Sequence record: MK250027.1
Length of the DNA stretch: 64,000 bases
Reading direction: 5' to 3' (one strand)
Every line of letters begins with the position of its first letter. Positions within the stretch are counted from its first letter, which is position 1. Positions 29,307-54,464 of this stretch are shown here, in pieces. The position numbers were made by a program, and so were the translations under genes. The notes beneath the pieces are model-generated. The model worked only from the letters and a program-made list of their open reading frames with translations, ran no database searches and was not told the origin of the DNA.

Positions 29307-31855
29307 ATGAGCAACAAAAAAGTAGTTGGAATTGATTTAGGTACTGGAAACAGTGCGGTAGCCATCATCGAGAATGGCGTAGCTAAAGTAATTGAAAATG
29401 CAGATGGTTATAAGACAACTCCATCTGTAGTGTACATCAAGGGTGATGAAACAAAAATTGGTGCAGCCGCAAAACGTGGTATGGTAATGAATCCAAAGAA
29501 TACCATTTCATTTGTAAAGCGTTTTATGGGTGCTAAATGGGATGATCCTGATGTACAGAAGATGTTAAAGATGGTAACATATGATGTTATCGATGAAAAT
29601 GGAAATCCTCGTCTTAAGATTGACGATAAAACATATTCACCAGAGCAAATTTCATCTATGATTCTTAAGAATATGTATGAAGTTGCAAAGGGATTCTATG
29701 GAACAGAAGATTGTAAAGACGCTGTTATTACTGTTCCTGCATGGTTTAATGATATTCAGCGTAATGCTACAAAGGTAGCAGGTCAGTTGGCTGGTTTGAA
29801 TGTTCTTCGTATTATTAATGAGCCAACTGCAGCAGTTCTTTCTTCAAATATTGATACAAAATCTGGAGATAAGATTGTTCTTGTTAATGATCTCGGTTGT
29901 AAATATTCTGTTACTGCATCCGCGCTTGCTGCTTAATCACTAAAGCAAGTGTAAAGTTAAAAACCCGTTAATTGCTGAGAGTCCCACGTTAGTTATATAC
30001 TAATGATAAAAATGGTCTTAAATACCGCTATTAGATGGTGACATACTAATTAGCACCAACTTTAATGTGTTGGGTATGGTAAAAAGTTTAAGAATTGGGT
30101 GACCGCCGTAAATCTTAAAATATATTAAGATAGAGCAGCCAAGTATCTTGGTAACAAGATAAAGGTTCAACGACTAGAAAAAGTAATCCTATTAATTTAT
30201 GAAGAAATTTCCACGAATGCGGGTTAGTTTAGAAGTGGTACAAGTGATATAAGATAAATATTTAAAGTATTTATTTATCTTATGATTAATACATAGTTCT
30301 TTGATTTATTGATTAAACACATATTTAAATTATATGATGAAAATAATAATTTGGAATTTAAGTTTGTGTTTGATTATGAATTAAATGAATTTAATCAATA
30401 ACTTCTAAATGAAAGAGATAGTCTTGAGGAATGAAAGTTCCTCGGTAAGATAAAGAGCTTACAAAGTTAAATAGAAACAAATAGGGTACAGAGGATGTTT
30501 CTATTGTTGAGATTTCTGATGGTATGATTGAGGTTCTTGCATCTGATGGTGATGTGTTCCTTGGCGGTCAGAATTATGATAATGCCATTGTTCAGTGGCT
30601 TATCGATGAGTTTAAGAAAGATACAGGTATTGATTTGAGTAAGGATAAGATGGCATATGCACGTCTTGTAGAGGCAGCAGAGAAAGCAAAGTGTGAGTTG
30701 TCAACTACTACTCAGACAGAGATTAACCTTCCTTATATTACTGTATCTGATGGTGTTCCTCAGATGTTGATTAAGACTCTTAATCGCGCTACATTTGAGA
30801 GACTTACAGAAGATCTTACAAATAAGGTTGTAGAGATTGCACATCGTGCTGTAGAGAAGGCAGGTATTACAGAGGATCAGATTAGTGAGATTCTTCTTGT
30901 TGGTGGTTCTTCACGTATTCCTTCAGTTCAGGATGCATTGGAGAAGTCATTTAACAAACCTTTGAATAAGACCTGTAATTTTGATGAGGCTGTTGCACTT
31001 GGTGCTGCTATTCAGGCAAATACACTTGCAGGTAATGCAACAGAGGATTCAGTACTTCTTTTGGATGTTACACCAATTTCACTTGGTATTGAGGTAAATG
31101 GTTGTGAGATGGCTAAGTTGATTGAAGCTAATACAACTATTCCTACACGTAAGTCACAGACATTTACAACTGCAGTAGATAATCAACCAGCTGTAACTAT
31201 TAAGGTACTTCAGGGTGAACGTCCAATGTCCGCTGATAATAAGGTAATTGGTACATTTAATTTGGAGGGTATTGCACCAGCTCCTAAGGGTGTTCCTCAG
31301 ATTGAAGTAACATTTGATATTAATGCGGATGGTATTCTTGAAGTAACTGCAAAGGATAAGGGTACAAATAAGGAACAGAAGGTAACAATTCAGTCTCCTA
31401 ACGCACTTTCTGATGAAGAGATTGCACGTATTAAGGCAGATGCTGAGAAGTTTGCAGAAGCAGATAAGAAGAAGAAAGAGGAAGTTGATAAGTTGAATAC
31501 TGCAGAACAATATGCAACACAGGTTCAGAAGTATATTGATGATGAGAAAACAGGTGCATCTGTTCCATCTGATAAGAAAGAAACATTGAAGACAAAGATT
31601 ACTGCAGTTCTTGATGCAGTTTCTAAGAAGGATGTATCAGCAGCAGAGACTGCACGTGCAGATCTTGAAACTGTATTTAAACCTATTGTTGAGGAAATGT
31701 ATAAGAATGCAGGTGGTGCAACAGCAGGTCAACCTCAGAATGAATCACAGGGAAATCCATTTGCTAATGCAGGATTTGGTGATGCAAATGCTTCAACTTC
31801 TGATACTAAGGCAGATGATGACGTTCAAGAGGCAGATTTTGAGGAAGTAAAGTAA
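29307..31855 (+). CDS. dnaK: DnaK/Hsp70, two exons (29307-29900 and 30485-31855) split by a group I intron
   Basis: GIDLGTGNS, TVPAWFND, INEPTAA; splicing gives VNDLGC|GTEDVSIVEISDG (canonical DLGGGTFDVS); LVGGSSRIP, LLDVTP, EAD..E tail. Confidence 0.95.
29901..30484 (+). mobile_element. Group I self-splicing intron (584 nt) without a full-length ORF
   Basis: Exon ends in U and intron ends in G; core elements AATTGCTG, GCAGCCAAG, GGTTCAACGACTAG and AGAGATAGTC (P7 GACTA/TAGTC); removal restores the frame and the conserved motif. Confidence 0.9.
30282..30401 (+). pseudogene. 39-codon intron-internal ORF, probable homing-endonuclease remnant
   Basis: MINTQFFDLLIKHIFKLYDENNNLEFKFVFDYELNEFNQ with one TAG; ATG sits in a 12-bp hairpin in the peripheral loop. 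Confidence 0.4.
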
Positions 31856-37768: not shown

Positions 37769-38275
37769 ATGGATCGTGGTGAACGACGTTATCGTCAAAA
37801 GAAAAAGTGGATTTCTCGTTTAAAGAAATTATGGAATTCACATGTATTTTGGAATTATATTTCTCCTGTAAAGAAAAAGAAACCAAAATGTATTAGAGAA
37901 ATGAAAGAACATAGAGCTACATCATGGCAAGATTTTACGAAGGATCATTTTGGTGTATTAGTTAAAAATACAGGAACTGTTATGACTGATAATAAACGTT
38001 TGGATATTACAGAAGAACATAAGAGAAAAATGCAAAACAGAAAACTTACAAAGGAAGATCAAGAAGAAGTTGATGAATATCTTGATAGAAAAGAACATCC
38101 ATATAGGTTTGAAGATTTTTGTTGTAATTGTGATAATTTTCCTGGAGATAGATTATATGAATCTAGAGAATACGATGGTAAAGATGTTTGTCCATTTGTA
38201 GAAAGATTTAAATCTGGTGAATTAAATGGAGATACAGAATGGCAGAAGTTAGGATGTGAAAGTTTTATTGATTAA
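37769..38275 (+). CDS. Hypothetical basic protein
   Basis: ORF. Confidence 0.7.
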   Translation: MDRGERRYRQKKKWISRLKKLWNSHVFWNYISPVKKKKPKCIREMKEHRATSWQDFTKDHFGVLVKNTGTVMTDNKRLDITEEHKRKMQNRKLTKEDQEEVDEYLDRKEHPYRFEDFCCNCDNFPGDRLYESREYDGKDVCPFVERFKSGELNGDTEWQKLGCESFID

Positions 38276-38373
38276 TTAAATATTATTATAGGTGATTAGC
38301 AAATTATAGTTAATCACCTATAACTTTTTATATATTTTCTTATATAATCTTTAACTAATAATATTTTTAATTT

Positions 38374-40095
38374 ATGACAATGATGAAAACAGATATTGAA
38401 ATTTCGCAGAGTGCACAACTTCAAAGTATTGATTATGTATTTGAAAAACTTGTTCCTTATGATGATCGTATAAAAAATGGATATATTGAGCAGTACGGTA
38501 ATTATATGGGTAAAATTCCATTGACATATTTAAAATCAGGAATGGAATGTGCAAATAAACATCTTATTCTTGTAACTTCAATTAGTCCTACTAAATCTGG
38601 TATTGGTAAGACAACTGTAAGTGTAGGATTGAATGATGCACTTAAGAAATTAAAGAAAAATTCCATTGCGGTATTGAGAGAACCTTCTCTTGGACCATGT
38701 TTTGGTATGAAAGGAGGCGCATGTGGAGGTGGTTATTCACAAGTAGTACCAATGGATAAGATTAATCTTCATTTCACGGGAGATTTTCATGCAATTACAA
38801 CAGCAAATAATATGATTGCTTCTGCAATCGATAATTATTTCTATCATAATCCAGAAAAAGAATTAGATATAAAGAAAATTACATTTAGACGCTGTTTAGA
38901 TATTAATGATAGGTCTCTTAGAACTATTTACACAACACAGCGATATGGAAAACTTATTCAAACAGGATTTGATATTACACCAGCATCAGAAATGATGGCA
39001 ATTTTTTGCATGGCATATGATATAGATGATTTACGTAAACGTATTGATAAAATTATCATTGCAGAGCGAGAAGATGGTAGTTTTATGTATTGTAAAGAAT
39101 TAGGAATAACCGGTTCAATTGTTGCATTGTTATCAGATGCGATTAAACCTAATTTAGTACAGAGTCTTTATAATAATCCTGTTATTATTCATGGTGGTCC
39201 ATTCGCTAATATTGCACATGGTTGTAATTCAGTTATCGCAACACGTATGGGATTGTCATTATGCGATTATGTTGTAACAGAAGCAGGATTCGGTTCAGAC
39301 CTTGGTGCTGAAAAATTCATTGATATTAAATGTAGAACTGCAGGTTTTTCGCCAGATGTTATTGTATTGGTTGCGACTATTCCAGGTTTGAAAAATCAAG
39401 GTGGTTGTAAAGATATAACAAAGGAAGATACAAGATCACTTGAGACAGGACTCAAGAACCTTGATCAACATTTGAATGCACTTAATACATTTGGTTATAA
39501 GATTATTGTCACTAATAATGTATATGATACAGATACGCGAAATGAACAGATAATTCTTGAGAATTTCTGTAAGAGTAGAAAGGTAAAGTGTATTAAGAAT
39601 ACATGCTATGTAGATGGTAGAGATGGAGCATTAAATTTAGCACAAGAAGTTATTGATACCATTGATAATACGAAGCATATAGCATTTCCAAATTGGGCAT
39701 ATCAAAAATATGATAATATAAAAGATAAGATTTCAGATCTTTGCGAAAATATTTACGGTATAAATCCAGATAATATACGTTATTCATATAAGGCTGAAAA
39801 GTTTATTGAGAAATATGATAAGACATATGAGAATTATAAGGATGAATTAATTCAGGAAATTAGTGAATATCCTATTTGTATGGCAAAGACACAATATTCA
39901 TTTTCAGATAATCCATCAGTATTGCCAGTACCAACACATGATACTACATTTACTATTGATGAAATTAAAATTAATAGAGGTGCTGGATTTTTAGTTGTTA
40001 TTGCAGGTAATATGATGCGAATGCCGGGTTTACCAAAAGAACCAGCAGCAAAGAAAATAGATTATGTTGATGGAAAAATTACAGGATTGAATTAA
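38374..40095 (+). CDS. fhs: Formate--tetrahydrofolate ligase
   Basis: SPTKSGIGKTT, LREPSLGP, KGGACGGGYSQV, NLHFTGDFHAIT, HGGPFANIAHGCNS, VTEAGFGSDLGAEKF, MPGLPKEPAA. Confidence 0.97.
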   Translation: MTMMKTDIEISQSAQLQSIDYVFEKLVPYDDRIKNGYIEQYGNYMGKIPLTYLKSGMECANKHLILVTSISPTKSGIGKTTVSVGLNDALKKLKKNSIAVLREPSLGPCFGMKGGACGGGYSQVVPMDKINLHFTGDFHAITTANNMIASAIDNYFYHNPEKELDIKKITFRRCLDINDRSLRTIYTTQRYGKLIQTGFDITPASEMMAIFCMAYDIDDLRKRIDKIIIAEREDGSFMYCKELGITGSIVALLSDAIKPNLVQSLYNNPVIIHGGPFANIAHGCNSVIATRMGLSLCDYVVTEAGFGSDLGAEKFIDIKCRTAGFSPDVIVLVATIPGLKNQGGCKDITKEDTRSLETGLKNLDQHLNALNTFGYKIIVTNNVYDTDTRNEQIILENFCKSRKVKCIKNTCYVDGRDGALNLAQEVIDTIDNTKHIAFPNWAYQKYDNIKDKISDLCENIYGINPDNIRYSYKAEKFIEKYDKTYENYKDELIQEISEYPICMAKTQYSFSDNPSVLPVPTHDTTFTIDEIKINRGAGFLVVIAGNMMRMPGLPKEPAAKKIDYVDGKITGLN

Positions 40096-41180
40096 TGAAT
40101 GATAAAATAATAGATATAAATGAGTGGTTGAGATGGGTGATTTCCTTACATCCATCTCAAAAACAAATTAATACCATAAAACCATATTGGAAATGCAACT
40201 CTAAGGGAGATTATCTTAAAGTATTTAAAAAAGATATAGGACGATTTGGTAAACCTATACCAAATATTAATGATACAGAATGGATAGATGGTAAATATTC
40301 ATGGGAGTTAGATAGATTATTTGATATATATAAATTTGTTCCTAATTGTGAACAACTCGCAAAGGTTAATATAGGATATTTTGTATTAAAAGAAACATTA
40401 GACAATGATAAATGGAAATATTATATTCAAGTGATAAAACAATATGATAAAGAAGTGAAAGATTATAAAGGTGGTCCATTTACATTTAGAATTATAATGG
40501 TAGACTTTGGTATTTTTAAATTATACGCACGTCAAACAAGAGAATTAGAAGGTGACCATAAACATGTAATGTATTCTAATATTAAAAATAAAGAATTAGA
40601 GGAACAAAATAAGTTTATTGAATGCTGGAGTGATGATCAATGTATATTCATATCTATACCAGGACTAAAAATCAATAAAGATTTAATAAAAGGTAAATCT
40701 CAAAAAATTGAATTACAAAAAGAAAAACGTTTATATTGTTTTAATGATAATAATGGAAACAAATATCAATTACCAGAATTATATTATCCTACAAATATAA
40801 GAACATTTATTGATTATTGTATAGATAAAAAAATATTACCATTTTCAAAAACTGTTAGAATTTGGTCTAAAACTGATTATTATGAGATATATTCAGACCC
40901 TGAAAATAAATCGTTCAAAGATTATATGTCAGAGGACGAAATGTTATATCGTTATCCATTTCCTATGATGAATATTAAATCAAAAAAAGAAATAAAAGAA
41001 TATATTAATGATAGGAAGCAAAAACATGCATGGGAAATAAATCGAGGTTTACCAAAAACAGTTACAATAAATTATAATATAAATGATATATTCGTACCTA
41101 TTGATTCAATTACGCAAGATATATGTAATGAATTTATATATAAGATGAATAATAGTAAATTATATGAAATAATACAATGA
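40095..41180 (+). CDS. Hypothetical protein
   Basis: 361-aa ORF coupled to fhs. Confidence 0.75.
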   Translation: MNDKIIDINEWLRWVISLHPSQKQINTIKPYWKCNSKGDYLKVFKKDIGRFGKPIPNINDTEWIDGKYSWELDRLFDIYKFVPNCEQLAKVNIGYFVLKETLDNDKWKYYIQVIKQYDKEVKDYKGGPFTFRIIMVDFGIFKLYARQTRELEGDHKHVMYSNIKNKELEEQNKFIECWSDDQCIFISIPGLKINKDLIKGKSQKIELQKEKRLYCFNDNNGNKYQLPELYYPTNIRTFIDYCIDKKILPFSKTVRIWSKTDYYEIYSDPENKSFKDYMSEDEMLYRYPFPMMNIKSKKEIKEYINDRKQKHAWEINRGLPKTVTINYNINDIFVPIDSITQDICNEFIYKMNNSKLYEIIQ

Positions 41181-41671
41181 ATAAGGAATTACAACAATAT
41201 ATAAATAAAGCAGATAATTCTCAAAATATAAAGTATTTTGAGAATATGATGAATGCTTTATATAATAAAGCATATGAATATCGTAAATTAAGAGATGAAG
41301 CAATTATATCTAATAAAGATTTGAGAGGAAAATATGTAAGGTTATCAAAAGAACGAGATTATGATAATCCAGTATATATGCATGTAGTTAATCAGTTCGT
41401 TACAAATGATGGTGGTAGAGATAGATACCAAGTATATCTTGAAGGATTAACATTTAGATATAGTGATGCAACTATATATTTGGATAATATATGGCAAGAA
41501 GTAGATGGATGTAGACAAATTCATTATGATATTCATGAATTTGAAAATCTTCAAGTTAAATATTTAACAGAAGGAGAATTCAGAAAGTTATATATGGAAA
41601 TGGTTAGTAATATGGTATCTATTTATGAACATGCAGAAAAGTTAATAAATAATAAAATTTCATCAAAATAA
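41177..41671 (+). CDS. Hypothetical protein
   Basis: ORF with ATGA overlap. Confidence 0.75.
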   Translation: MNKELQQYINKADNSQNIKYFENMMNALYNKAYEYRKLRDEAIISNKDLRGKYVRLSKERDYDNPVYMHVVNQFVTNDGGRDRYQVYLEGLTFRYSDATIYLDNIWQEVDGCRQIHYDIHEFENLQVKYLTEGEFRKLYMEMVSNMVSIYEHAEKLINNKISSK

Positions 41672-41814
41672 TTTTAGACTTTATTAATATAATTATATAT
41701 AAAATACATAACGAATGTTAATTATAAGTTAAGTTATTTTAATTATTAAAATTAAAATTAAAAATATTTTAGACTTTTTTAACATTCTTATGTAAAATAT
41801 ACATAAGATTTTAA

Positions 41815-42225
41815 ATGATTGAATTTCTATATAAAGGACAAAAATGTTTTACTAATAATCTTCCGAAGAAATTAAAGAGAATGAAGATTACAAAGGATGA
41901 TATAGAAATCCTTAGAGAATTTGATGAAACTGAAAAGAAAGTAAAACCAGAAGATAATAACAATGAATTTGATGATTGGATTAAAGTTGTATATTGGGAT
42001 CCTATTACAAATTATACACATATTGGTTTTACACATGGTATGAATAAACCTGATAAAAATGAATTTTTTAAAAATTCTAAATGGAATGAAGAAACAAAAA
42101 CAGGGTTAAAATATTGTACTAAAGAATGGATTGATAATGTTGTTTTGTTAAATGGAATACCTAAATATCCTATTGTAATAGGTGATGATGGTAAACCTGT
42201 GTTAGAAACAAAATATAATTGGTAA
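41815..42225 (+). CDS. Hypothetical protein
   Basis: ORF. Confidence 0.7.
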   Translation: MIEFLYKGQKCFTNNLPKKLKRMKITKDDIEILREFDETEKKVKPEDNNNEFDDWIKVVYWDPITNYTHIGFTHGMNKPDKNEFFKNSKWNEETKTGLKYCTKEWIDNVVLLNGIPKYPIVIGDDGKPVLETKYNW

Positions 42226-42231
42226 TTATTA

Positions 42232-42993
42232 ATGTCTAAAGATGATTTAGTAAATATACAAGAACAACCAGGAATTTATATGATTTAGAATGATATAAAT
42301 AAAAAATGTTATATAGGCTAGAGTATAAATTTACATACAAGATTGTTACATCATATAAATAATTCTATAAATAATCGTTATAATGCACCAATATATAGAA
42401 CATTTAAAAAATATGGTATAGAAAATTTTTCTGTATATATTTTAAAAAAATTTGATAATCCTATAACTACATATATTAAAGAATAGTTAGATATTTATGA
42501 GAAGAAATATATTAATGAATATAATAGTTATGGAAGCACGGGATATAATCAAACAAAAGGTGGTGATGGAGGTATAGATGGATATAAATTTACTAAAGAA
42601 CAAAAATTAACAATTTCTAAAAATTCGTATAAAATATAGAATGATGGTAGAAATACAATATATTGTTATGATATAAAAAATAATAAATTTATTGAATCAA
42701 CATCATTATAGGAATTAAAACGATAGTTAAATGTTAATTTTAGAACAGGATGTATTAGAAATTTATTAATATATAATCAATATATTTTATCACGTTCAAA
42801 AGATGATTTATTATAGAAAATTAATAAGTATAATAATAAATTATAGGAGTATAATACAAATGGTTGTAGTAAATTAACTCATGAAATGAAAGATGATATA
42901 ATTAATAATATATCAGAAAAAGAATTTCTTAGTAAATATAATGTATGTAAATCTACATATTATCATTATAAAGAAAAATTAAATATATCTTAA
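42232..42993 (+). CDS. GIY-YIG homing endonuclease, 253 aa; TAG=Gln; absent from the track
   Basis: PGIYMI(Q)NDINKKCYIG(Q)SINLHTRLLHH...YEKKYI...GYNQTKGG; TAG falls on the conserved YIGQS Gln. Confidence 0.9.
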
Positions 42994-43016
42994 TTGCGTG
43001 TATTAAGATATAGTAT

Positions 43017-43088
43017 TGGGGATTAGTATAGTGGTCAGTACAGAGGTCTCTAAAACCTTTAGGCCGAGTTCGAGTCTCGGATCCCCAA
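43017..43088 (+). tRNA. Amber suppressor tRNA (anticodon CUA), Gln-type
   Basis: Acceptor TGGGGAT/ATCCCCA (U1-A72), D stem GTAT/GTAC, anticodon arm GAGGT-CTCTAAA-ACCTT, T arm CCGAG-TTCGAGT-CTCGG. Confidence 0.92.
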
Positions 43089-43130
43089 CAATTAAATGAC
43101 ATAAGTAATATTTTAAAGATTTGATGAATT

Positions 43131-43415
43131 ATGAAGCAGAAGACAATTATTAAGACAGAATATTACGCAGATGATGGTAGAGTATTTAATAATGAGAATG
43201 ATTGTAAGTTATATGAGGATAAAGTGAAAATTCCAAAGATTGGATTATACTCGGTTATTGATAAGTATGACGCTAAATCAGTTGTTAATTATATAGATTT
43301 GATTTTAGGACAATATAATGTTATTGGAGATTCATATATTAGAGATACTAAAATTAAAAATATGTTAACACATCTTCAAAAACAATTTTCTAGTTATTTA
43401 CCGGATGAAAAGTAA
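43131..43415 (+). CDS. Hypothetical protein
   Basis: ORF. Confidence 0.7.
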   Translation: MKQKTIIKTEYYADDGRVFNNENDCKLYEDKVKIPKIGLYSVIDKYDAKSVVNYIDLILGQYNVIGDSYIRDTKIKNMLTHLQKQFSSYLPDEK

Positions 43416-43461
43416 TATATAAGATGTCTTATTCTATTAAAAATAATAGTGAGATGATTTA

Positions 43462-43680
43462 ATGAATAAGGAAGATATATTGAAGAATGAATATACAGAA
43501 ATTGCAGACTTAGCAACAAGAATGATTAATAATGCAAAAGAAGCAGAAGCATTATATAATGAAGTAAAGAGAATTAATAGTATGCAATTAATAGAAGATA
43601 ATTTATTTAACCTTCAATTTGTAATGAATTGGCAGGATATTTTGAATAAGGTATCTATTACACAGGTTGAAGATTGTTAA
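43462..43680 (+). CDS. Hypothetical protein
   Basis: ORF. Confidence 0.65.
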   Translation: MNKEDILKNEYTEIADLATRMINNAKEAEALYNEVKRINSMQLIEDNLFNLQFVMNWQDILNKVSITQVEDC

Positions 43681-43738
43681 GAAATATAAGGTCGAGATTA
43701 TTTTTTAGTCTCGACTTTTTTAATTAAAATATTTTATG

Positions 43739-43746
43739 TATCTTTG
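43739..43746 (+). promoter_or_regulatory. Bacteroidota -7 promoter element
   Basis: TATCTTTG. Confidence 0.75.
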
Positions 43747-43773
43747 AATTGTTAAATATAAAAATAGAATTTT

Positions 43774-44574
43774 ATGAAAGCTAAATCATATATATTTGTA
43801 CATAATAAAGAAAAATCTACATATAATATTCCAGACGAATATTTTGTAGATAATACAAATCTTAGAATAACTCATTTTAATACAGAAAATAGTTATTTTA
43901 ATATATCTGCATATGGATTTCTTATTAAGAAAGATATTTTTGATAAAGAATGTAAATCATTTTATACATTAAATCCTGTATCTAAATATACAAATGGTGA
44001 TATTAATGGAAGACGCATTGCATTTGTAAAAATTAATAAAGAATTACCAAAATATGATTTAACCGGAAATGCTATTAAAAGTTCTTTATCTTCAGATAAT
44101 TGGACAGTTGTAAATGTTATAGATAATACATCAAGATGGACAAGAATTCCAGATGATTGTTATTTACTTACACCAAAGTTTAAATCAAGTGGACTTAAAA
44201 TTCGGTGTTTTGAAAAAGAAGAAGATGCTATTGCTGAATATAATAAAAATGAAGAGAAAAAATCAGCAAATAAAAAAGCAAAATGGAACGCAATAAATAC
44301 GGCGCCAAATAATGGTAATATCAATTTAGCAACACTTAAATATAAAGTTGAACGAATTCATATAAAGACAAATTATTTGAAGGATGTTCATGAAGGTGAT
44401 ATTATATATGGCGTTATTTCTGTATTAGAGAATGGTAAGAATAAACTTAATGTATCATCTCATTATGCAAATTATGTAGATGTATATGTTAATGATAAAT
44501 TATATAAAACAGTTCCCATGAATGTATTTGGAGATTTACTTTCAAAACATTTACAATTATCTGTTTTTGTTTAA
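43774..44574 (+). CDS. Early hypothetical protein
   Basis: 266-aa ORF. Confidence 0.75.
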   Translation: MKAKSYIFVHNKEKSTYNIPDEYFVDNTNLRITHFNTENSYFNISAYGFLIKKDIFDKECKSFYTLNPVSKYTNGDINGRRIAFVKINKELPKYDLTGNAIKSSLSSDNWTVVNVIDNTSRWTRIPDDCYLLTPKFKSSGLKIRCFEKEEDAIAEYNKNEEKKSANKKAKWNAINTAPNNGNINLATLKYKVERIHIKTNYLKDVHEGDIIYGVISVLENGKNKLNVSSHYANYVDVYVNDKLYKTVPMNVFGDLLSKHLQLSVFV

Positions 44575-44600
44575 TTAATAATCTTAAAAATAATTTTAAT

Positions 44601-44903
44601 ATGAAATTTTCAACATATATTAATAATATAATAGATGCAATATTTTTTCCGAATTTTCTTATTGAAGAACGGGAAGATAATAAGAAATTAAATGAATCAT
44701 ATAAAAATTATATCAAATCAATTAATGATTATGGTGATTCAGGATGGAAAGAAGCAACTAAATATGCGAAGTTAGTAGATAATTTAAGTTATCAACTAGA
44801 TGTATTAGCAAGGGATTATAAGAATTTAACAAATATAAATAGAGATTTAAAAAGAAAATTAGAACGGTATTATAAAACAGGAAAAAATTCTAAGAAAAAG
44901 TAA
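44601..44903 (+). CDS. Hypothetical protein (coiled coil)
   Basis: ORF. Confidence 0.7.
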   Translation: MKFSTYINNIIDAIFFPNFLIEEREDNKKLNESYKNYIKSINDYGDSGWKEATKYAKLVDNLSYQLDVLARDYKNLTNINRDLKRKLERYYKTGKNSKKK

Positions 44904-44944
44904 ACTATTTTATATTTCTTATATATAAATAATATAATTATTAA

Positions 44945-45351
44945 GGGGATGAATTTGGATTTGCTTATTAATTATGTGGTAATAAATCGTGTAGGAAAGT
45001 TAATAGCCTTTTGTAGTAATACAAAGAAACTTAGCAAATAAATTTAAATGACGACGAAATAGAATTTCGTATGGCAGCTTAATCCTGATAGGATTGGTAA
45101 TATACACCCATTGAAGCATTTGCTCCTTATACGGTAAGTTTGAGCATTGCCACGGAGTTCGTAAGAGTGATAATCTCTGTTAAATAAAACTCTTACATAT
45201 ACTTATTCATTGTCCAATAAGAGTGATTATGACATTAAACTGTTTAACTCTAATAACACAGATATAAATGAAAACTAATAAAGACATACGCACGTAGATA
45301 GTTTATTATTGACATGTTAGTAATACGTGGTTTCGAGTACCACCATCTCCA
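44945..45351 (+). ncRNA. ssrA: tmRNA; tag reading frame ...DDEIEFRMAA* (about 45050-45082)
   Basis: 5' GGGGATG pairs with 3' CATCTCC-A including the G3-U70 Ala determinant; T arm GTGGT-TTCGAGT-ACCAC; internal tag ending AA-stop; exact resume codon uncertain. Confidence 0.88.
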
Positions 45352-45490
45352 CATTTTTAGATTATATTTCATAATATAGAATTTTTAATTGTTTAATTTT
45401 GTAAATGAGTTGTATGTTTAGATAAACATATGACTCATTTTTTTGTATAATAATAAATAAGATAATAAAACTAAATATAAGCATAAATAT

Positions 45491-47377
45491 ATGCCAACTA
45501 AATTTATAGCAAGAAAGTTTAATCCAGGGAAAGCAGATCATAATAAAATAAATACACTTATTAATCTGTCTTCACTTAGTTTAAATTCAGCATAGAGTAT
45601 TCTTAAAACTTCATTGGCTTTAGGATCTACTCAAACAAGTAATTATTCTGGTGATTCATTAACACCGTTTAATGATATTTTAAATCAAGATTAGAATAAG
45701 TTTACATAGTATGCAGATATTACTAAAAATACAAGTTAGTCTTATGCATACTATGATTTGTCATATCAATAGAGAAGAGAATAGTTAAGGTAGTTTGCTT
45801 CACAACAAACTATTTCATTTGTTTTAGATACTATTGCAGATGAATCTATTATATTGGATGAAAATAATTATTTTGCATAGTTAGATTTAAATCTTCTTAA
45901 ATTAAAACTTAATACTAATTATAAAGGTGCAAATGGAGAAACTGCTGATGATTTAATAAAGAATTGTCAGAAAGCATTTAAGATTATATATTCAACATAT
46001 GGATGGGATAAATCTAATGATGCATGGAATTATTTTAAGAAATTTCTTATAGAAGGTTATCTTGCATTTGAGATTGTTGTTGATAATCTTATGAAACCTA
46101 CAAGAATCATAGGTATGAGGGAATTGGATCCTGCTACATTGGAACCTGATATTGAAATTGATCCAATGACAAATAAAGAAGTAAAGGTTTGGTATCAATA
46201 TAAAGGTGACGCATAGTTAGAAAGGAAAATTCCAGATTCTAATATTGTATATATATCATGGTCAACAGGTATGTATGGAGAGTAGTCACGTGTATCATAT
46301 CTAGAAGGTTTAATAAGATCATATACAATGTTAACATAGTTGGAGACTTCTCGTATGGTATGGAATATCATGAATGCATAGAAAAGAGTTAAAGTAGGTA
46401 TTCCTGTAGGTAATATTTCTTAGGATAAAGCTCGTGCACGCGTAAATGAAGTTAAAGCAGATTGGAATGAAGAAACAACAGTTGATGAAATATCAGGTGA
46501 GATGGTAGTAAATGGACAACCACGATTCTCATTTTCAAAGACACATTTCTTCCCTGTACGTGATGGTAATTCAATGACTATAGAAGAAATCCCAACAGAA
46601 GGATATGATTTAAGTGATATTACTCCATTGAAATATTTCTGGAGGCGTTTTATATTAGAAACTAAAATACCAGCTAATAGATTTATGATTGATCCTGCAG
46701 CAGAAGGAGCGCATCCATTGGGTGGTGATGATGCAAGTATAACACGAGAGGAATATGCGTTTGGACGTTTTATTAGTCGTGTTAGAAATATATATCGTGA
46801 AATTTTGTTAAAACCATTATGGGTACAAATATGTTTAATGATGCCAGAGTTAGCAAGTTCTGAATTATTGAAACAATGTATAGGTATTGTTTTTAATGAA
46901 GAAAATATGTTTGTTAAAGCAAAAGAAAGAACTGCGTTAAAACAAGGCGCGGAAATTATAGGTACATTAGCATAGATTCAATTAGGTGAGAATAAACCAT
47001 TCTTTAGTATGAAATTCTTAATTGAGAAATTCTTAGGTATGTCTGATGAAGATTTTGCACTTAATGAGAAATATAAACAAGGTGAAATTATAGAGCGCTT
47101 AGAACAAGCTAAAACTATTAAACAACATCAAGAAATGGGTAAACAAGTTGGTGAACAACAAGGTAATGGAACTCCTGGTGAAATGGATTTCGGCGGAGGT
47201 TCTGATGCAGGTGGCGGAAGTTCATTTGACGATTCATTTGGAGGCGGTTCTGATGCAGGCGGTGATTTTTCTGGAGGTGATGAAGTATTCTCTGGTGGTG
47301 ACACTGGTATGGGATCCGGTGGTTCTGAAATTGCAGATACTGGTGGCGGTGATGAAGGTGGAGGTGACTTCGCTTAA
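45491..47377 (+). CDS. Portal vertex protein (T4 gp20-like), 628 aa; many TAG=Gln
   Basis: LDTIADESI, GIPVGNIS.DKA, FFPVRDG..TIEEIP, LKYFWRR...IPANRF, ITREEYAFGRFISRVR; Gly/Asp-rich tail. Confidence 0.88.
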
Positions 47378-47461: not shown

Positions 47462-48091
47462 ATGAGTGATAAATAGAAACATTTTTATGGATGTTTACCA
47501 TCTAAATTGGATGGTACAGAACATATAGTAAATGTTGATTCAAAAATAGTATTACCAGATGAATTTTCATTGCGTGATGTAATGCCGCCAGTAAGAGATC
47601 AAGGAAACACATAGACATGCGTATGTTAGTCTTTAACTGCAATGTTGGATTTCCTTCATAACAGTAAAGTAGGAACTGATGGTAAATGTAATAATTATTC
47701 TATAAATGATTTGTATAGATAGAGATCTAATTATCCATAGGAAGGCATGTCAATTAAAGAAGCTATGAAAATTCTTAAGGATAAAGGCCTAAATGGAGAA
47801 AAGATTAATTCATACGCATTAGTTCCATCAGTAGAAGTTATGAAAAGAACTTTAGTTATGTTTGGACCTTGTTGCGCTGGATTACCTGTGTATTCTGATA
47901 ATGATCCATATTTTTGGAAGAAAGGTTGTGAATATGCAGGGGGTCATGCGATCTGTATTTGTGGATATAATAAAAGAGGATTTATTATTAGAAATTCGTG
48001 GGGAAGTTCATGGGCAGATCATGGATATATAACGATTCCTTATGATGAATATGAAGATTCTGTATTTGAAGCATGGACTGCAATTTTATAA
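47462..48091 (+). CDS. Papain-like (C1) cysteine peptidase, 209 aa; TAG=Gln
   Basis: VRDQGNT(Q)TCVC (oxyanion Q, catalytic C), GGHAICICGY, IRNSWG. Confidence 0.85.
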
Positions 48092-48158
48092 TAATATATT
48101 AAAGATGATTAGTAATGTTAAATGTTACTAATCATTTTTTATTATAATATAATTTATG

Positions 48159-48166
48159 TATCTTTG
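48159..48166 (+). promoter_or_regulatory. Bacteroidota -7 promoter element
   Basis: TATCTTTG. Confidence 0.75.
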
Positions 48167-48202
48167 TATAAACAATTTTATATTTAATTTATAATATTTA
48201 AT

Positions 48203-48658
48203 ATGATGAACTTTAATCATCCTTATAATGAAGATAAGTGTATAGAAAGACTTATGAAAGAATATCATAAGCATAATAATTTAATAGTAGCATTTGATTT
48301 TGATAATACAGTATTTGATTACCATAATGATGGTGGTGATTATTCAGATATTATAGATATTTTGGATTTATGTCATCAGTTAAAATTTACATTGGTATTA
48401 TATACATGTGAAACAAGTACAAAAAAATTAGCATGGAAAATAAATTGGTGTAAAGAACATATGGGATTTAAACCAGATTATGTAAATAGTTCTCCTGTAT
48501 TGAATAATATTACATCTAATGGTAAAATATATTATAATATACTCTTAGATGATCGTGCAGGACTAAATGAAGCATATTCTATACTTGTACATGTTATTTC
48601 AAATATAGAAGGCGAAAAAGGTATTTATTTAGAACCACAATGGGATAAAGAAAGATAA
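48203..48658 (+). CDS. HAD-superfamily hydrolase
   Basis: IVAFDFDNTV (DxD motif I), LYT (II), ILLDDRA (IV). Confidence 0.75.
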   Translation: MMNFNHPYNEDKCIERLMKEYHKHNNLIVAFDFDNTVFDYHNDGGDYSDIIDILDLCHQLKFTLVLYTCETSTKKLAWKINWCKEHMGFKPDYVNSSPVLNNITSNGKIYYNILLDDRAGLNEAYSILVHVISNIEGEKGIYLEPQWDKER

Positions 48659-51484: not shown

Positions 51485-51559
51485 GGTCCGTCTGGTGTAA
51501 TTGGTAACATGACAGATTGTGATTCTGTTGTTCAGGGTTCGAGTCCCTAACGTGACCCA
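51485..51559 (+). tRNA. tRNA-His(GTG), imperfect acceptor stem
   Basis: ACAGA-TTGTGAT-TCTGT anticodon arm, G-1/C73, TTCGAGT loop. Confidence 0.8.
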
Positions 51560-51576
51560 AAATATTATTAATATTT

Positions 51577-51652
51577 AGCGTAGTGGCCCAGTTGGTCTAA
51601 GGCACCTGTTTTGGGAACAGGTTAGATCGCACGTTCGAATCGTGTCTACGCT
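51577..51652 (+). tRNA. tRNA-Pro(TGG)
   Basis: AGCGTAG/CTACGCT; CCTGT-TTTGGGA-ACAGG. Confidence 0.9.
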
Positions 51653-51767
51653 ACAGAATAGAGTTCTTATGTTATCCTTACATAACTAAAAGAACTAAAA
51701 CTTAAGATGGTAAGGCATCTATATAATGGAAGTTCACGCCCAAGGGAAGATTTATAAGTTATAATTT

Positions 51768-51842
51768 ACTCTGTTAACTCAATTGGATTAGAGTATTTCG
51801 CTACGAACGAAAAGGTTGTGAGTTCGATTCTTACACAGAGTA
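51768..51842 (+). tRNA. tRNA-Arg(ACG)
   Basis: ACTCTGT/ACAGAGT; TTTCG-CTACGAA-CGAAA. Confidence 0.9.
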
Positions 51843-51851
51843 CAAGTAAAT

Positions 51852-51924
51852 ATCTCTATAGCTCAAAAGAATAGAGCAGTTCTCTCCTAAAGAACAGATA
51901 ACAGTTTGATTCTGTTTGGAGATA
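51852..51924 (+). tRNA. tRNA-Arg(CCT), T-loop TTTGATT
   Basis: ATCTCTA/TGGAGAT; GTTCT-CTCCTAA-AGAAC. Confidence 0.8.
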
Positions 51925-52441
51925 CAAACAAAATTAACATTATTAATATAGACTTTTATCTATTAATGGAATATATTATAATGTAATTTGAATTTTAAAA
52001 TACTATTAAAATGTGGGGAGTAGAGTTCCCATCATTTAAAGAGTTTCGAGAAGAAGGTATTGTATGTAAAAGCATTAAGTTTCGTTTAGCTGACGAAATG
52101 TTACCAAGCGGTGATGGTATTCATGTACATAGGTCCATCCGTATAACTTCAGGGAATCGTAAGCATTAATCTTGGAGAGTACAGTTTTTAGTCTGAAATG
52201 ACGAATTTTCCTACTGGTTGCTCAATATGATATTAAGAGTCGGAGATAATTATTTGTAAGTTCCACAATTACGAGAGGAAAATGGAATTAAGTTGAAGGA
52301 ATAACGTGATTATTCTTGGTGTGATTAGGAGAACGAAAATAACCAGTATGTATGGTGTACGTGTGCATACAGAAACAAAGCAAATAATAGCCCTTAGAGA
52401 ATTTGCCGAGTAAAGGACATTAATAGTATTTTTATTTATTT

Positions 52442-52519
52442 GCAGTATTGGTGTAGCTGGAGGCGCATTCCTGACTTCCACTCAGGCGGCTTGCGCGAGT
52501 TCGATTCTCGCATACTGCT
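52442..52519 (+). tRNA. tRNA-Gly(TCC)
   Basis: GCAGTAT/ATACTGC, U73; CCTGA-CTTCCAC-TCAGG. Confidence 0.9.
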
Positions 52520-52728
52520 CATAATAAGGTAGAGTATCAATGAATGATAGAGAATAAGTTCCTGTCTGAGATCAACCTATCTGTAGTATTTAGATAATTT
52601 TATGTATACATAAAATTATAACGAAGTTTATATTACCTGTAGTCGTAATATTCAAATCGTTCGTTGACATAGTTATTCCGTGATGTAGTAGAGAGTTATA
52701 ATCAGCATATAACAAACGGAATATTTTT

Positions 52729-52801
52729 GCGGAAGTATATCAATGGCTAGATAGATACGTTGCCAACGTATAGGTTGTGAGTTCGAGTCTCATTTTCCGC
52801 T
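52729..52801 (+). tRNA. tRNA-Gly(GCC)
   Basis: GCGGAAG/TTTCCGC, U73; ATACG-TTGCCAA-CGTAT. Confidence 0.9.
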
Positions 52802-52944
52802 CTATAAACGTTTCGAGGTTTTAAAGTTGAATGTACCACCTTGCGCTTGTGTTGCTATTCACCTTTGAGTAATAGTAAAAAACTTATGGTACCAAGGATG
52901 TTTTCTACGTTGTTACATCCATTTTTTTGAATATGATAGAATAT

Positions 52945-53089
52945 GAGAGTCAATACAGCAAATTAAATTGATAGATAATGTTTGAAGATTATACACAAAA
53001 AGACTCTTGAATCAAATTATAATGGGAGGCAATACAGCAAATTTTGTATTAAGGATTATTTTGCTAAAATAATATTCTATACGCCTCCT
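52945..53089 (+). ncRNA. Two tandem structured RNA elements sharing CAATACAGCAAATT
   Basis: Copy 1 closed by AGAGTC/GACTCT, copy 2 by GGAGGC/GCCTCC. Confidence 0.5.
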
Positions 53090-53096
53090 GATACTT

Positions 53097-53179
53097 GACG
53101 AGTTGCTGAGAATTGGTTAATCGCACGGTCTGCAAAACCGTTGGTCTTTGACATGTCGGTTCGAGTCCGACACTCGTCT
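53097..53179 (+). tRNA. tRNA-Cys(GCA) with a 13-nt variable arm
   Basis: GACGAGT/ACTCGTC, U73; ACGGT-CTGCAAA-ACCGT. Confidence 0.9.
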
Positions 53180-53212
53180 CTTTAGATTAATATTTTAAAA
53201 TACTATTATAAG

Positions 53213-53473
53213 ATGAAGAAATTATTTTCTTTTATATTTTATACAATAATGATTACATCATTATTTGGATGTGCAACAAAACAAGATACAATTAATTATC
53301 TTAATAATTATGTACATAAAAATATTTCTGAAAATTGTATAAACATTTTCAGTAATCAAAGATATAATGAATATATTGATACTGTTACTAATATTAAATA
53401 TTATGTTTATATAGATTATAATAGTAACATCAATATAACAGATAAAAGATTTCCGAGGTATACAGCTCGTTAA
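53213..53473 (+). CDS. Small putative lipoprotein
   Basis: MKK + hydrophobic stretch + LFGC lipobox. Confidence 0.65.
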   Translation: MKKLFSFIFYTIMITSLFGCATKQDTINYLNNYVHKNISENCINIFSNQRYNEYIDTVTNIKYYVYIDYNSNINITDKRFPRYTAR

Positions 53474-53771
53474 AAGAGGTTGACTTGTATATTCTACATT
53501 ACCTACTGTATAACAATATATGAGTGTACATGTGAAAAGATACACCATGTTCTATTAATATAAAAATGTACATATATATGGTAACAATTATATTAATATC
53601 AGATGCATGACATATATGAATATAATAACGAATTCGTGAAATGACTATTGTTTTTAGTTGCTTGGAAACGGCGAACTTAGTTTTATCAATAGAGGAAGTA
53701 TAATATTAAAACAGTTAAATGTAAATCTTTCTGAGACAATGGGGACAACTTGTAGTAAGAGAGTATTTTTA

Positions 53772-53886
53772 GCTAGTATAGTTTAGTGGCAAAACACCCA
53801 AATCCCAGGGATAAGAGATGGTTTGAGTTGTAGTGTACAATACAATATACAGAAGATTTTGGTGAGTTCGATTCTCACTGCTAGCT
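53772..53886 (+). ncRNA. tRNA-like RNA (Gly-like ends) with an extra ~44 nt in the central region
   Basis: GCTAGTA/TGCTAGC-U, D arm GTTT/AAAC, T arm GTGAG-TTCGATT-CTCAC; no canonical anticodon arm. Confidence 0.6.
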
Positions 53887-53892
53887 CAATAT

Positions 53893-54022
53893 GAAGTGCG
53901 TAGTTTAAATGGTAAAACATCCTTTGAGTAGGACTCTGACGAGAGATAGATAACAATGTTAGACTCTATTTAATTCCATTGTTTTATTAATGAGTATAGG
54001 TTCGAATCCTATGGTACTTCCA
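53893..54022 (+). ncRNA. tRNA-like RNA with ~60-nt central expansion
   Basis: GAAGTGC/GTACTTC, D arm GTTT/AAAC, T arm ATAGG-TTCGAAT-CCTAT; irregular anticodon arm. Confidence 0.6.
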
Positions 54023-54310
54023 AATTTATATAGATAAAAAGATTCTGGTGATTAGATAAAACATTATAAGAAAAGAGAAAAAACTTAGGTAACTGCAGAT
54101 AACTAAGGGTCGTAAGAGTATATGAAGAAAGATGAACTATGGATACCTCCTTATAATGCGTTTTATCAATAATTAAAGTAGTCTATAATATAAGTTCATT
54201 AACGTTATAGAAAAAACGAATATTGATAAGTCTACTATGCAGATGGGGCATTGAGAATGCCGTATAGTTCTAAAGCATCGTAAAACAGTTTATTTATATA
54301 TTTTTAATAT

Positions 54311-54385
54311 GGCTAGATAGCTCAGTTCGGTTAGAGCGCGTGATTCATATCCACGAGGTCGTGTGTTCGATCCACACTCTTGCTA
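54311..54385 (+). tRNA. tRNA with CAT anticodon (Met or Ile2)
   Basis: GGCTAGA/TCTTGCT; CGTGA-TTCATAT-CCACG; GTGTG-TTCGATC-CACAC. Confidence 0.85.
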
Positions 54386-54464
54386 CAGTGTTTTTAGTTG
54401 TTTATTAATGATTTGAGATATATCAATTTTTGGTATATCTCTTTTTTATTTAGAAAATAATTTG

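Follow-up and report, generated by a model that had tools for sequence, protein, structure and literature searches.

The DNA analyzed here, a stretch of 64,000 nucleotides (nt) from sequence record MK250027.1 (the window), carries on its plus strand a free-standing GIY-YIG homing endonuclease gene (HEG; 42232-42993) of 253 codons and a TAA stop, in which TAG is read as glutamine. The end of the stop codon at 42993 is separated by 23 nt from the start of an amber-suppressor tRNA with anticodon CUA (43017-43089, plus strand; tRNA#2), which was called by ARAGORN and matched the Rfam tRNA model RF00005 with 61.7 bits. Positions 41000-45500 of the window are 100% identical to the Prevotella megaphages Lak-B7 and Lak-B8 and 99.6 to 99.7% identical to Lak-B2, Lak-B4, and Lak-B5. 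We describe the structure of this locus, its variation among Lak genomes, and the association of nuclease and suppressor tRNA across other phages.

The translation of TAG as an amino acid in Lak phages has been reported before (PMC6784885; bioRxiv 10.1101/2021.08.26.457843), and it is directly visible in the window, where reading TAG as Gln fuses broken frames into long open reading frames (ORFs), such as those of a 2443-amino-acid protein and a T4-type portal. We show here that this amino acid is glutamine: (i) TAG exchanges with CAA or CAG between HEG homologues of different Lak genomes; (ii) the TAG at codon 30 of the nuclease occupies the family-invariant Gln (Q30) of the YIGQ motif; and (iii) tRNA#2 combines a U1:A72 pair with a D arm resembling those of tRNA-Gln genes of the phage. 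The use of TAG in the window is bimodal, with 188 in-frame TAGs distributed over 24 of the 55 ORFs and none in the remaining 31. The HEG is among the most TAG-rich ORFs (31.6 TAG per 1000 codons, accounting for 62% of its Gln codons), and it is flanked by ORFs free of TAG, five before it (37769-42225) and four after it (43131-44903).

The eight in-frame TAGs of the HEG, all on the plus strand, lie at codons 19 (42286-42288), 30 (42319), 85 (42484), 136 (42637), 160 (42709), 165 (42724), 195 (42814), and 205 (42844), and neither TAA nor TGA occurs in frame over the 253 codons. The TAGs at codons 19, 30, 136, and 195 are shared by all four of the Lak-lineage homologues compared. A preliminary description of this locus had placed TAGs in the nuclease from codon 19 onward and the tRNA 23 nt downstream, both of which are exact; its end coordinate, 43088, takes in the tRNA, but the nuclease ORF proper stops at 42993.

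The encoded protein has the layout known from I-TevI and the Seg enzymes of T4, in which a nuclease at the N terminus is joined by a flexible linker to a C-terminal part, here presumed to bind DNA. Residues 13 to 105 match the Pfam GIY-YIG family PF01541 (E value, 3.4e-8; 34.1 bits against a cutoff of 22.6), and PHROG families annotated as homing endonucleases cover most of the protein (residues 12 to 232; E values down to 4.9e-19). The I-TevI catalytic domain is matched both in sequence and in the AlphaFold2 model (mean predicted local-distance difference test [pLDDT] score, 77), for which the I-TevI structures 1LN0 and 1MK0 were the top Foldseek matches (E value, 1.4e-5; TM score, 0.82; root-mean-square deviation, 2.4 Å), so that residues 1 to 106 (42232-42549, plus strand) can be assigned to a catalytic domain whose predicted fold superposes on I-TevI. 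Six residues that are invariant in a 16-sequence family alignment, Y16, Y27, R37, H41, E90, and N106, pair with I-TevI Y6, Y17, R27, H31, E75, and N90, respectively, in a residue alignment whose register was adjusted by eye. In the predicted structure, a low-confidence linker (residues 101 to 138) leads into a small beta/alpha middle domain, and the C terminus ends in a three-helix region (residues 217 to 249; 42880-42978, plus strand) that is defined by the AlphaFold2 secondary structure and was modeled with confident pLDDT. This region is presumed to be a helix-turn-helix DNA-binding module; it has no Pfam match of its own, and several homologues carry NUMOD1 or helix-turn-helix domains.

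Translated by the standard code, the frame falls into pieces of at most 47 amino acids, as would be seen in a decaying pseudogene that is broken by stops and lies beside the tRNA by accident. This is almost certainly not what the locus holds, and we rejected it: TAG alone interrupts the frame, which is open with TAG read as Gln, one TAG stands on an invariant Gln, TAG recoding is genome-wide, the catalytic residues are intact and invariant, and the ratio of nonsynonymous to synonymous substitution rates against the other Lak-lineage homologues is 0.21 to 0.37. The HEG is thus intact and under purifying selection.

A whole-genome ARAGORN search of Lak-B7 (550,702 bp) found tRNA#2 as the sole tRNA with anticodon CUA (tRNA-CUA), and only three GIY-YIG matches are present in the same genome, which makes a chance adjacency of the two genes very unlikely. 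Since the HEG is full of TAGs and the only tRNA-CUA of Lak-B7 lies next door, it can be translated only once the suppressor works; dependence of the nuclease on amber suppression, as proposed in the preliminary description, is therefore borne out for Lak-B7. The acceptor stem of tRNA#2 has the pairs U1:A72, G2:C71, and G3:C70 with discriminator A, CCA is not encoded, and the D arm resembles that of the phage's own tRNA-Gln(UUG/CUG). A scan for promoters and terminators at the locus gave nothing above chance, and hence no support either way for cotranscription of HEG and tRNA.

Comparison of the Lak-B genomes revealed that the two genes form a variable cassette of 877 bp (42226-43102, plus strand), which is present in Lak-B2, -B4, -B5, -B7, and -B8 and absent from Lak-B1, -B3, -B6, and -B9, with flanks that are 96 to 99.5% identical. 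The left edge of the variable segment is the stop codon (42223-42225) of an upstream ORF (41815-42225, plus strand; 136 amino acids, no TAG, no Pfam match), and the right edge lies 13 nt past tRNA#2, ahead of a TAG-free ORF of 94 amino acids (43131-43415, plus strand) that is conserved in all Lak types and served as the anchor for retrieving the locus from relatives. In Lak-B1, -B3, -B6, and -B9, exactly this segment is replaced by 406 bp carrying a different, intron-split tRNA-CUA. This second suppressor, tRNA#1, belongs to a type whose acceptor and D arms are common to genuine tRNA-Gln(UUG) genes. Lak-A and Lak-C genomes have both suppressors, in the order tRNA#1(CUA), 31 nt, HEG, 30 nt, tRNA#2(CUA), while genomes of the Lak-B7 type keep only tRNA#2 and those of the Lak-B1 type keep only the split tRNA#1. 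At least one suppressor is thus retained in every genome, and the arrangement in the window derives from the tRNA-HEG-tRNA order of Lak-A and Lak-C by loss of the upstream copy and retention of the downstream copy. The number of TAGs in Lak HEGs ranges from 8 to 11, with 10 in Lak-A2.

The same three locus states recur in contigs from IMG/VR, ENA, and Logan, and both alleles, with and without the cassette, were seen in runs of one study. A metagenome scan with the downstream protein recovered four loci, all of near-identical Lak types, and so added no deep sampling of Lak diversity. One Lak-A-like contig (OIXA01000380.1; L078, 1-3346) keeps tRNA#2, and its homology to other Lak-A genomes begins just 42 nt before this tRNA; upstream, AT-rich repeat elements and a small ORF of unrelated sequence are found instead. 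Either the 3' end of the HEG has been rearranged in this contig, or its assembly is chimeric.

The association of this nuclease with an amber suppressor extends far beyond Lak. A profile-guided scan of IMG/VR yielded 80 loci, which, together with three further loci (L082 to L084), were clustered at 80% identity. In 17 of the 20 clusters closest to the window HEG, a same-strand tRNA-CUA ends 1 to 134 nt (mostly 12 to 32 nt) before the HEG start; these 20 clusters take in Lak, six RefSeq crAss-like phages, and others, and non-Lak homologues at 40 to 52% identity begin 1 to 14 nt past the tRNA-CUA. In the 21 more distant GIY-YIG clusters, by contrast, the 250 nt directly upstream never contain a tRNA-CUA. 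In the six RefSeq Suoliviridae, which represent four subfamilies, an annotated "tRNA-Gln," read by ARAGORN as CUA, is followed 14 to 25 nt on by a "homing endonuclease," and the pair mostly sits just before the large terminase gene. Synteny across relatives had been named in advance as a check on the preliminary description, and a lack of linkage as part of what would refute it; the linkage holds. What is not conserved is the order seen in the window, with the tRNA downstream of the nuclease: the conserved partner is the tRNA-CUA upstream, both in Lak-A and Lak-C and in the 17 clusters, and the window's own type, with its tRNA downstream, is one of the three exceptions. Such sites are mostly empty, with an HEG at only 1 of about 37 loci with a tRNA-CUA of the tRNA#1 type and at none of about 33 loci with the closely similar tRNA-Gln(UUG). 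An HEG almost confined to one type of site, most instances of which are unoccupied, is what would be expected if the element homes site specifically. The amber-suppressor gene is the preferred address of one homing endonuclease clade across very different gut phages, and it appears to be a hotspot for mobile elements.

This apparent preference has to be weighed against a known system. SegB of T4 cuts tRNA genes at a T-psi-C motif and favors inheritance of the T4 tRNA region (PMC2330249), and its homologues colocalize with tRNAs irrespective of isotype (PMC13096335). The HEG described here could likewise be a generic tRNA-cluster nuclease that recognizes a motif common to tRNA genes, such as the T-psi-C arm, and has its CUA neighbor by descent, for reasons unrelated to recoding. 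In accordance with this, more distant relatives lie directly downstream of tRNA-Met, -Trp, -Ile, -Leu, or -Ser, and 8 of the 21 more distant GIY-YIG clusters follow tRNAs other than tRNA-CUA. We nevertheless regard a generic enzyme as rather improbable, since none of the 20 closest clusters adjoins a tRNA of another isotype; since the adjacency spans crAss-like genomes of 100 kb, a contig of 167 kb, and Lak genomes of 550 kb; and since, within multi-tRNA clusters (L083 and L088), the HEG comes after the CUA tRNA specifically. One frozen ancestral pair would also explain the data incompletely, as the tRNAs adjoining HEGs are merely about 60 to 70% identical to one another. Finally, in a tblastn search of 50,697 phage records with the HEG protein (E value of ≤1e-6), no T4 or T-even record was found among the matches listed (45 of 63). 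The HEG thus seems to function like SegB without being a close homologue of it.

The family-wide comparison also bears on the stricter form of the idea in the preliminary description, according to which the need of the nuclease for the adjacent tRNA defines the cassette and the dependence itself maintains the linkage. In Lak, the HEG has 8 to 11 TAGs, four of them conserved across lineages, while the block around it has none and the sole tRNA-CUA is its neighbor, and TAG is also found in some non-Lak HEGs (four in L137, two in L088, and one in L084). However, most crAss-like homologues are TAG-free, and in 13 of the 17 linked clusters the HEG contains no TAG at all but lies at the same distance of 12 to 32 nt from the tRNA, so that dependence is not what holds HEG and tRNA together. 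Each recoded late gene is, moreover, equally dependent on the tRNA whatever its position, and since the tRNA acts in trans, linkage is unnecessary for decoding. We consider this form improbable; dependence on the suppressor is a trait of Lak and a few other loci and not of the family.

What the comparison does show is that tRNA and HEG have been replaced as a unit in two phage groups. Besides the Lak-B alleles described above, the Loutivirinae provide such a case: cr53_1, without the HEG, shares both flanks with cr56_1 and cr109_1, which have it, and the tRNA-CUAs at the same site are unrelated. Since HEG-bearing and HEG-free alleles carry different suppressor tRNAs, the tRNA travels with the nuclease, and HEG identity correlates with the identity of the neighboring tRNA (Mantel r, 0.49; p, 0.0002). 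Of the notion of a selfish cassette that carries its own decoding key, the behavior of HEG and tRNA as a unit is thus upheld.

A nuclease that is retained under purifying selection, and has been kept since the split of Lak-A and Lak-B, could alternatively have been domesticated to serve the phage, by excluding competitors or by a SegB-like segmental amplification of the suppressor locus. One crAss-like lineage has the HEG at all of its 16 loci, and such fixation would suit a role of this kind; SegB-driven amplification of tRNA genes has been demonstrated in T6, and it could explain the tRNA-CUA copies on both sides of the HEG in Lak-A and Lak-C. These two copies are, however, only about 60% identical and hence not recent duplicates, and the HEG is dispensable, being missing from Lak-B1, -B3, -B6, and -B9 and from most tRNA-CUA loci. 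We therefore hold domestication to be very unlikely.

The allele that replaces the cassette in Lak-B1 has a mobile element of its own. Its tRNA (acceptor strand UGCCCUA...) is cut in the anticodon loop by a 245-nt insertion, and no intron-free tRNA-CUA was found in the 547,991 bp of Lak-B1. The insertion is 74% identical (E value, 5e-30) to one that interrupts a tRNA-CUA of the crAss-like phage cr115_1 at the identical anticodon position, and a core-motif scan found 39 viral contigs, many of them with tRNAs (CUA, Leu-UAA, Lys, Ile, and others) into which an intron of this family is inserted. When 11 intron-bearing tRNA-CUA genes were aligned, RNAalifold predicted 66 consensus pairs, 40 of which show compensatory changes; the anticodon stem pairs across the intron, the 5' splice site has an invariant U.G pair (exon CUCU with guide GGAG), a P7-like helix (GACUAU/AUAGUC) is likewise invariant, and 9 of the 11 introns end in G. 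The insertion separates U35 from A36 in the CUA anticodon, and its removal in silico according to group I rules leaves a cloverleaf of 73 nt whose anticodon is CUA. As the Rfam model RF00028 scores the Lak-B1 insertion weakly (15.7 bits against a gathering threshold of 50; E value, 0.14 on a 481-nt search), it is the homologues and the covariation that identify it as a predicted ORF-less group I intron. The ARAGORN call of the split gene as Ser(cga) was rejected, because it violates the group I rules, there is no long variable arm, and intron-free homologues read CUA.

In cr115_1 itself (NC_055898.1, 30.5 to 30.8 kb; positions 2966-3266 of the retrieved locus L165), the tRNA-CUA with its intron of 228 nt lies directly upstream of the terminase gene, and the RefSeq record shows no feature at the split gene. 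The supplementary tRNA table of the original Lak paper lists Sup-CTA for A1, A2, C1, B2, B4, and B5 and shows blanks for other baboon genomes, and the cassette-free Lak genomes were reported with 30 tRNAs and the others with 31 (PMC6784885), from which it seems that the split suppressor was overlooked. A further contig of 282 kb (IMGVR_UViG_3300045988_113697; L264) has an intron of about 1 kb at the same anticodon site, in a tRNA-CUA on its minus strand that starts at position 8536 of the reverse-complemented locus; this intron encodes a 272-amino-acid HNH endonuclease, which makes it a homing system carried by an intron and directed at the anticodon loop of the suppressor. We also considered whether intron and HEG exclude each other. 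An HEG is adjacent in none of about 10 intron-bearing tRNA-CUA lineages and in 1 of about 37 intron-free loci of comparable tRNA type; the HEG is too rare overall for this difference to be significant, and no claim is drawn from it.

Taken together, we think it probable that the nuclease is a free-standing HEG of the Seg kind, for which the essential suppressor-tRNA locus serves as the homing site and which takes a tRNA with it. A suppressor tRNA would make a good homing site, since a recoded phage cannot lose it. In a mixed infection of related phages with and without the HEG, the enzyme would cut the suppressor-tRNA locus of the HEG-free phage, and repair would copy the HEG and the adjacent tRNA-CUA together (co-conversion), displacing the resident tRNA; the cassette's own tRNA, being different in sequence, would presumably escape cutting. 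The Lak HEG has in addition gained many TAGs among TAG-free neighbors, and its translation would have to wait for the suppressor to build up, which would amount to a built-in delay. The group I intron in the CUA anticodon, on the alternative allele of Lak-B1, -B3, -B6, and -B9, is a second mobile element contesting the same locus. The cleavage target, homing, the immunity of the cassette's tRNA, and the delay in translation are the parts of this scheme that we infer.

Several observations weigh against homing at the suppressor locus. Lak phages are uncultivated, and it is by inference that cleavage and homing enter the scheme. The canonical upstream tRNA is missing from the window itself. The correlation between HEG and tRNA identities could stem from shared vertical descent alone, and identical tRNAs also adjoin HEGs that are merely 65 to 72% identical. 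Between Lak-A and Lak-B, the HEGs are about 70% identical in amino acids and the flanking genes about 74% identical in nucleotides; an HEG as divergent as its flanks points to mostly vertical descent within Lak rather than to recent transfer. In the commonest crAss-like HEG lineage, an empty site was not found, all 16 loci with that tRNA carrying the HEG, so that the insertion point cannot be defined there. The genome comparison between Lak-B7 and Lak-B1 cuts both ways. Divergence rises to about 4.3% over the roughly 1 kb left of the cassette (41250-42225) from a background of about 0.7%, an approximately six-fold increase in the density of single-nucleotide polymorphisms (SNPs) that fits a conversion tract, but comparable SNP peaks are present at 48000-48500 (29 differences) and 40000-40500 (15 differences). 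Lak-B1 also has about 900 extra bases at approximately 30345 (window positions of about 30341-30350), and this insertion and the two distant SNP clusters may be further scars of recombination or of mobile elements. An opportunity for homing, on the other hand, is indicated by the occurrence of both alleles in runs of one study and by the recent recombination published for the nine baboon Lak genomes (PMC6784885).

A broader version of homing at the suppressor gene can be formulated, in which HEG and tRNA(CUA) form a horizontally mobile "recoding cassette" that moves suppressors among unrelated gut phages (Lak, crAss-like, and others) by homing with co-conversion, and the group I intron of the anticodon loop is a rival or an immunity element that breaks the nuclease target. 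We put this forward as a possible but doubtful extension.

Comparison with described systems shows which features of the locus have precedents. Like T4 SegB, the nuclease is a free-standing GIY-YIG HEG among phage tRNA genes that is missing from close relatives, and the effect proposed for it is that of SegB, a preferred inheritance of the HEG with neighboring tRNAs after cleavage of the HEG-free allele. The clade described here differs from the isotype-indifferent SegB homologues in that it is tied to amber-suppressor tRNA(CUA) and occurs in recoded Bacteroidota phages, the Lak HEG itself being written with TAG. With I-TevI it shares the fold and residues of the catalytic domain and a two-part layout with a flexible linker; I-TevI, however, lies inside the group I intron of T4 td, whereas the HEG here is free-standing and intergenic, has a C-terminal domain without detectable Pfam similarity, and meets at its locus a Lak-B1 intron devoid of an ORF. 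Phage populations in which one essential gene is associated both with an HEG outside the intron and with a group I intron lacking an ORF are known from F-CphI and the psbA intron of cyanophage S-PM2, described as "collaborative homing," and from T4 mobE and I-TevIII (PMC2790892; reviewed in PMC3984707), except that there HEG and intron cooperate in one genome, while in Lak they occupy alternative alleles.

A nuclease ORF enriched in a reassigned codon within an early standard-code region has likewise been described, in Agate phages, whose intron endonuclease is rich in the reassigned stop and was proposed to be delayed in its production until late infection (Borges et al., bioRxiv 10.1101/2021.08.26.457843); that enzyme differs in using TGA as Trp, in being intron encoded, and in not being linked to a suppressor tRNA gene. 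The Lak-B1 intron, for its part, resembles the group I introns of bacterial tRNA genes, such as cyanobacterial and plastid tRNA-Leu(UAA) and tRNA-fMet (PMC3984707), as an ORF-less intron of about 245 nt in the anticodon loop with the U.G pair at the 5' splice site, the conserved P7 core, and the terminal G. It is set apart by its host gene, a phage amber-suppressor tRNA, by its insertion between positions 35 and 36, by an internal guide whose pairing partner is the CUCU in the loop of the CUA anticodon, and by the HNH ORF of its relative in L264. The literature searched describes neither a link between homing endonucleases and suppressor tRNAs nor, for Lak or crAss-like phages, suppressors split by introns, although absence there is no proof. 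The nuclease is best read as a Seg-like free-standing HEG specialized on the amber-suppressor tRNA locus of recoded phages.

Several other features of these genomes were recorded in passing. A TAG-free auxiliary metabolic gene for formate-tetrahydrofolate ligase (38374-40095, plus strand; Pfam FTHFS; E value, 8.6e-205) is conserved in a Lak-like contig (L081). A gene resembling transfer-messenger RNA (tmRNA) (44945-45354, plus strand; Rfam RF00023, 47.3 bits against a gathering threshold of 47) lies between the suppressor locus and the portal gene, and its Lak-A2 orthologue is called a tmRNA by ARAGORN, with the tag peptide DDEIDFRMAA; a ribosome-rescue RNA adjoining a code-switch tRNA may be relevant to TAG read-through. 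Outside the window, Lak-B7 has a tRNA with anticodon UUA, of the ochre-suppressor type (345556-345628), which is also present in Lak-B1 and corresponds to Sup-TTA in the original Lak paper; despite this tRNA, TAA apparently serves as a stop codon in Lak. The tRNA cluster at 51485-54386 of the window contains a 115-nt Rfam tRNA match (53772-53886, plus strand; 36 bits) that ARAGORN did not call and that is probably the same gene as the long, insertion-bearing "Gly CCC" tRNA of the published Lak table. The tRNA-Lys(UUU) called by ARAGORN at 201704-201777 of Lak-B7 has an orthologue in Lak-B1 (201404-201478, minus strand) that is given a four-base "tttt" anticodon, reflecting an enlarged anticodon loop, and a gene resembling tRNA-Ser(GCU) with a 141-nt insertion is found in both Lak-B genomes (130955-131170 in Lak-B7).

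To conclude, this locus bears on how phages acquire and retain an alternative genetic code. The association of a homing endonuclease with the suppressor gives a concrete and testable route for the horizontal spread and turnover of a code-switching tRNA. The intron-split tRNAs, which are the sole suppressors of Lak-B1, -B3, -B6, and -B9 and of cr115_1 and are missed by standard tRNA finders, call for an immediate correction of annotation, and a TAG-rich nuclease in TAG-free surroundings provides a natural case of stop-codon gating of a potentially self-harming enzyme. Surveys have found suppressor tRNAs in phages showing no recoding as well as recoded genomes with no detectable suppressor (PMC7886860; PMC12386605). 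If true, a mobile recoding cassette would account for the former and would seed new reassignments of TAG to Gln, intron-split suppressors would account for part of the latter, and selfish elements would be competing over the gene that switches the genetic code.

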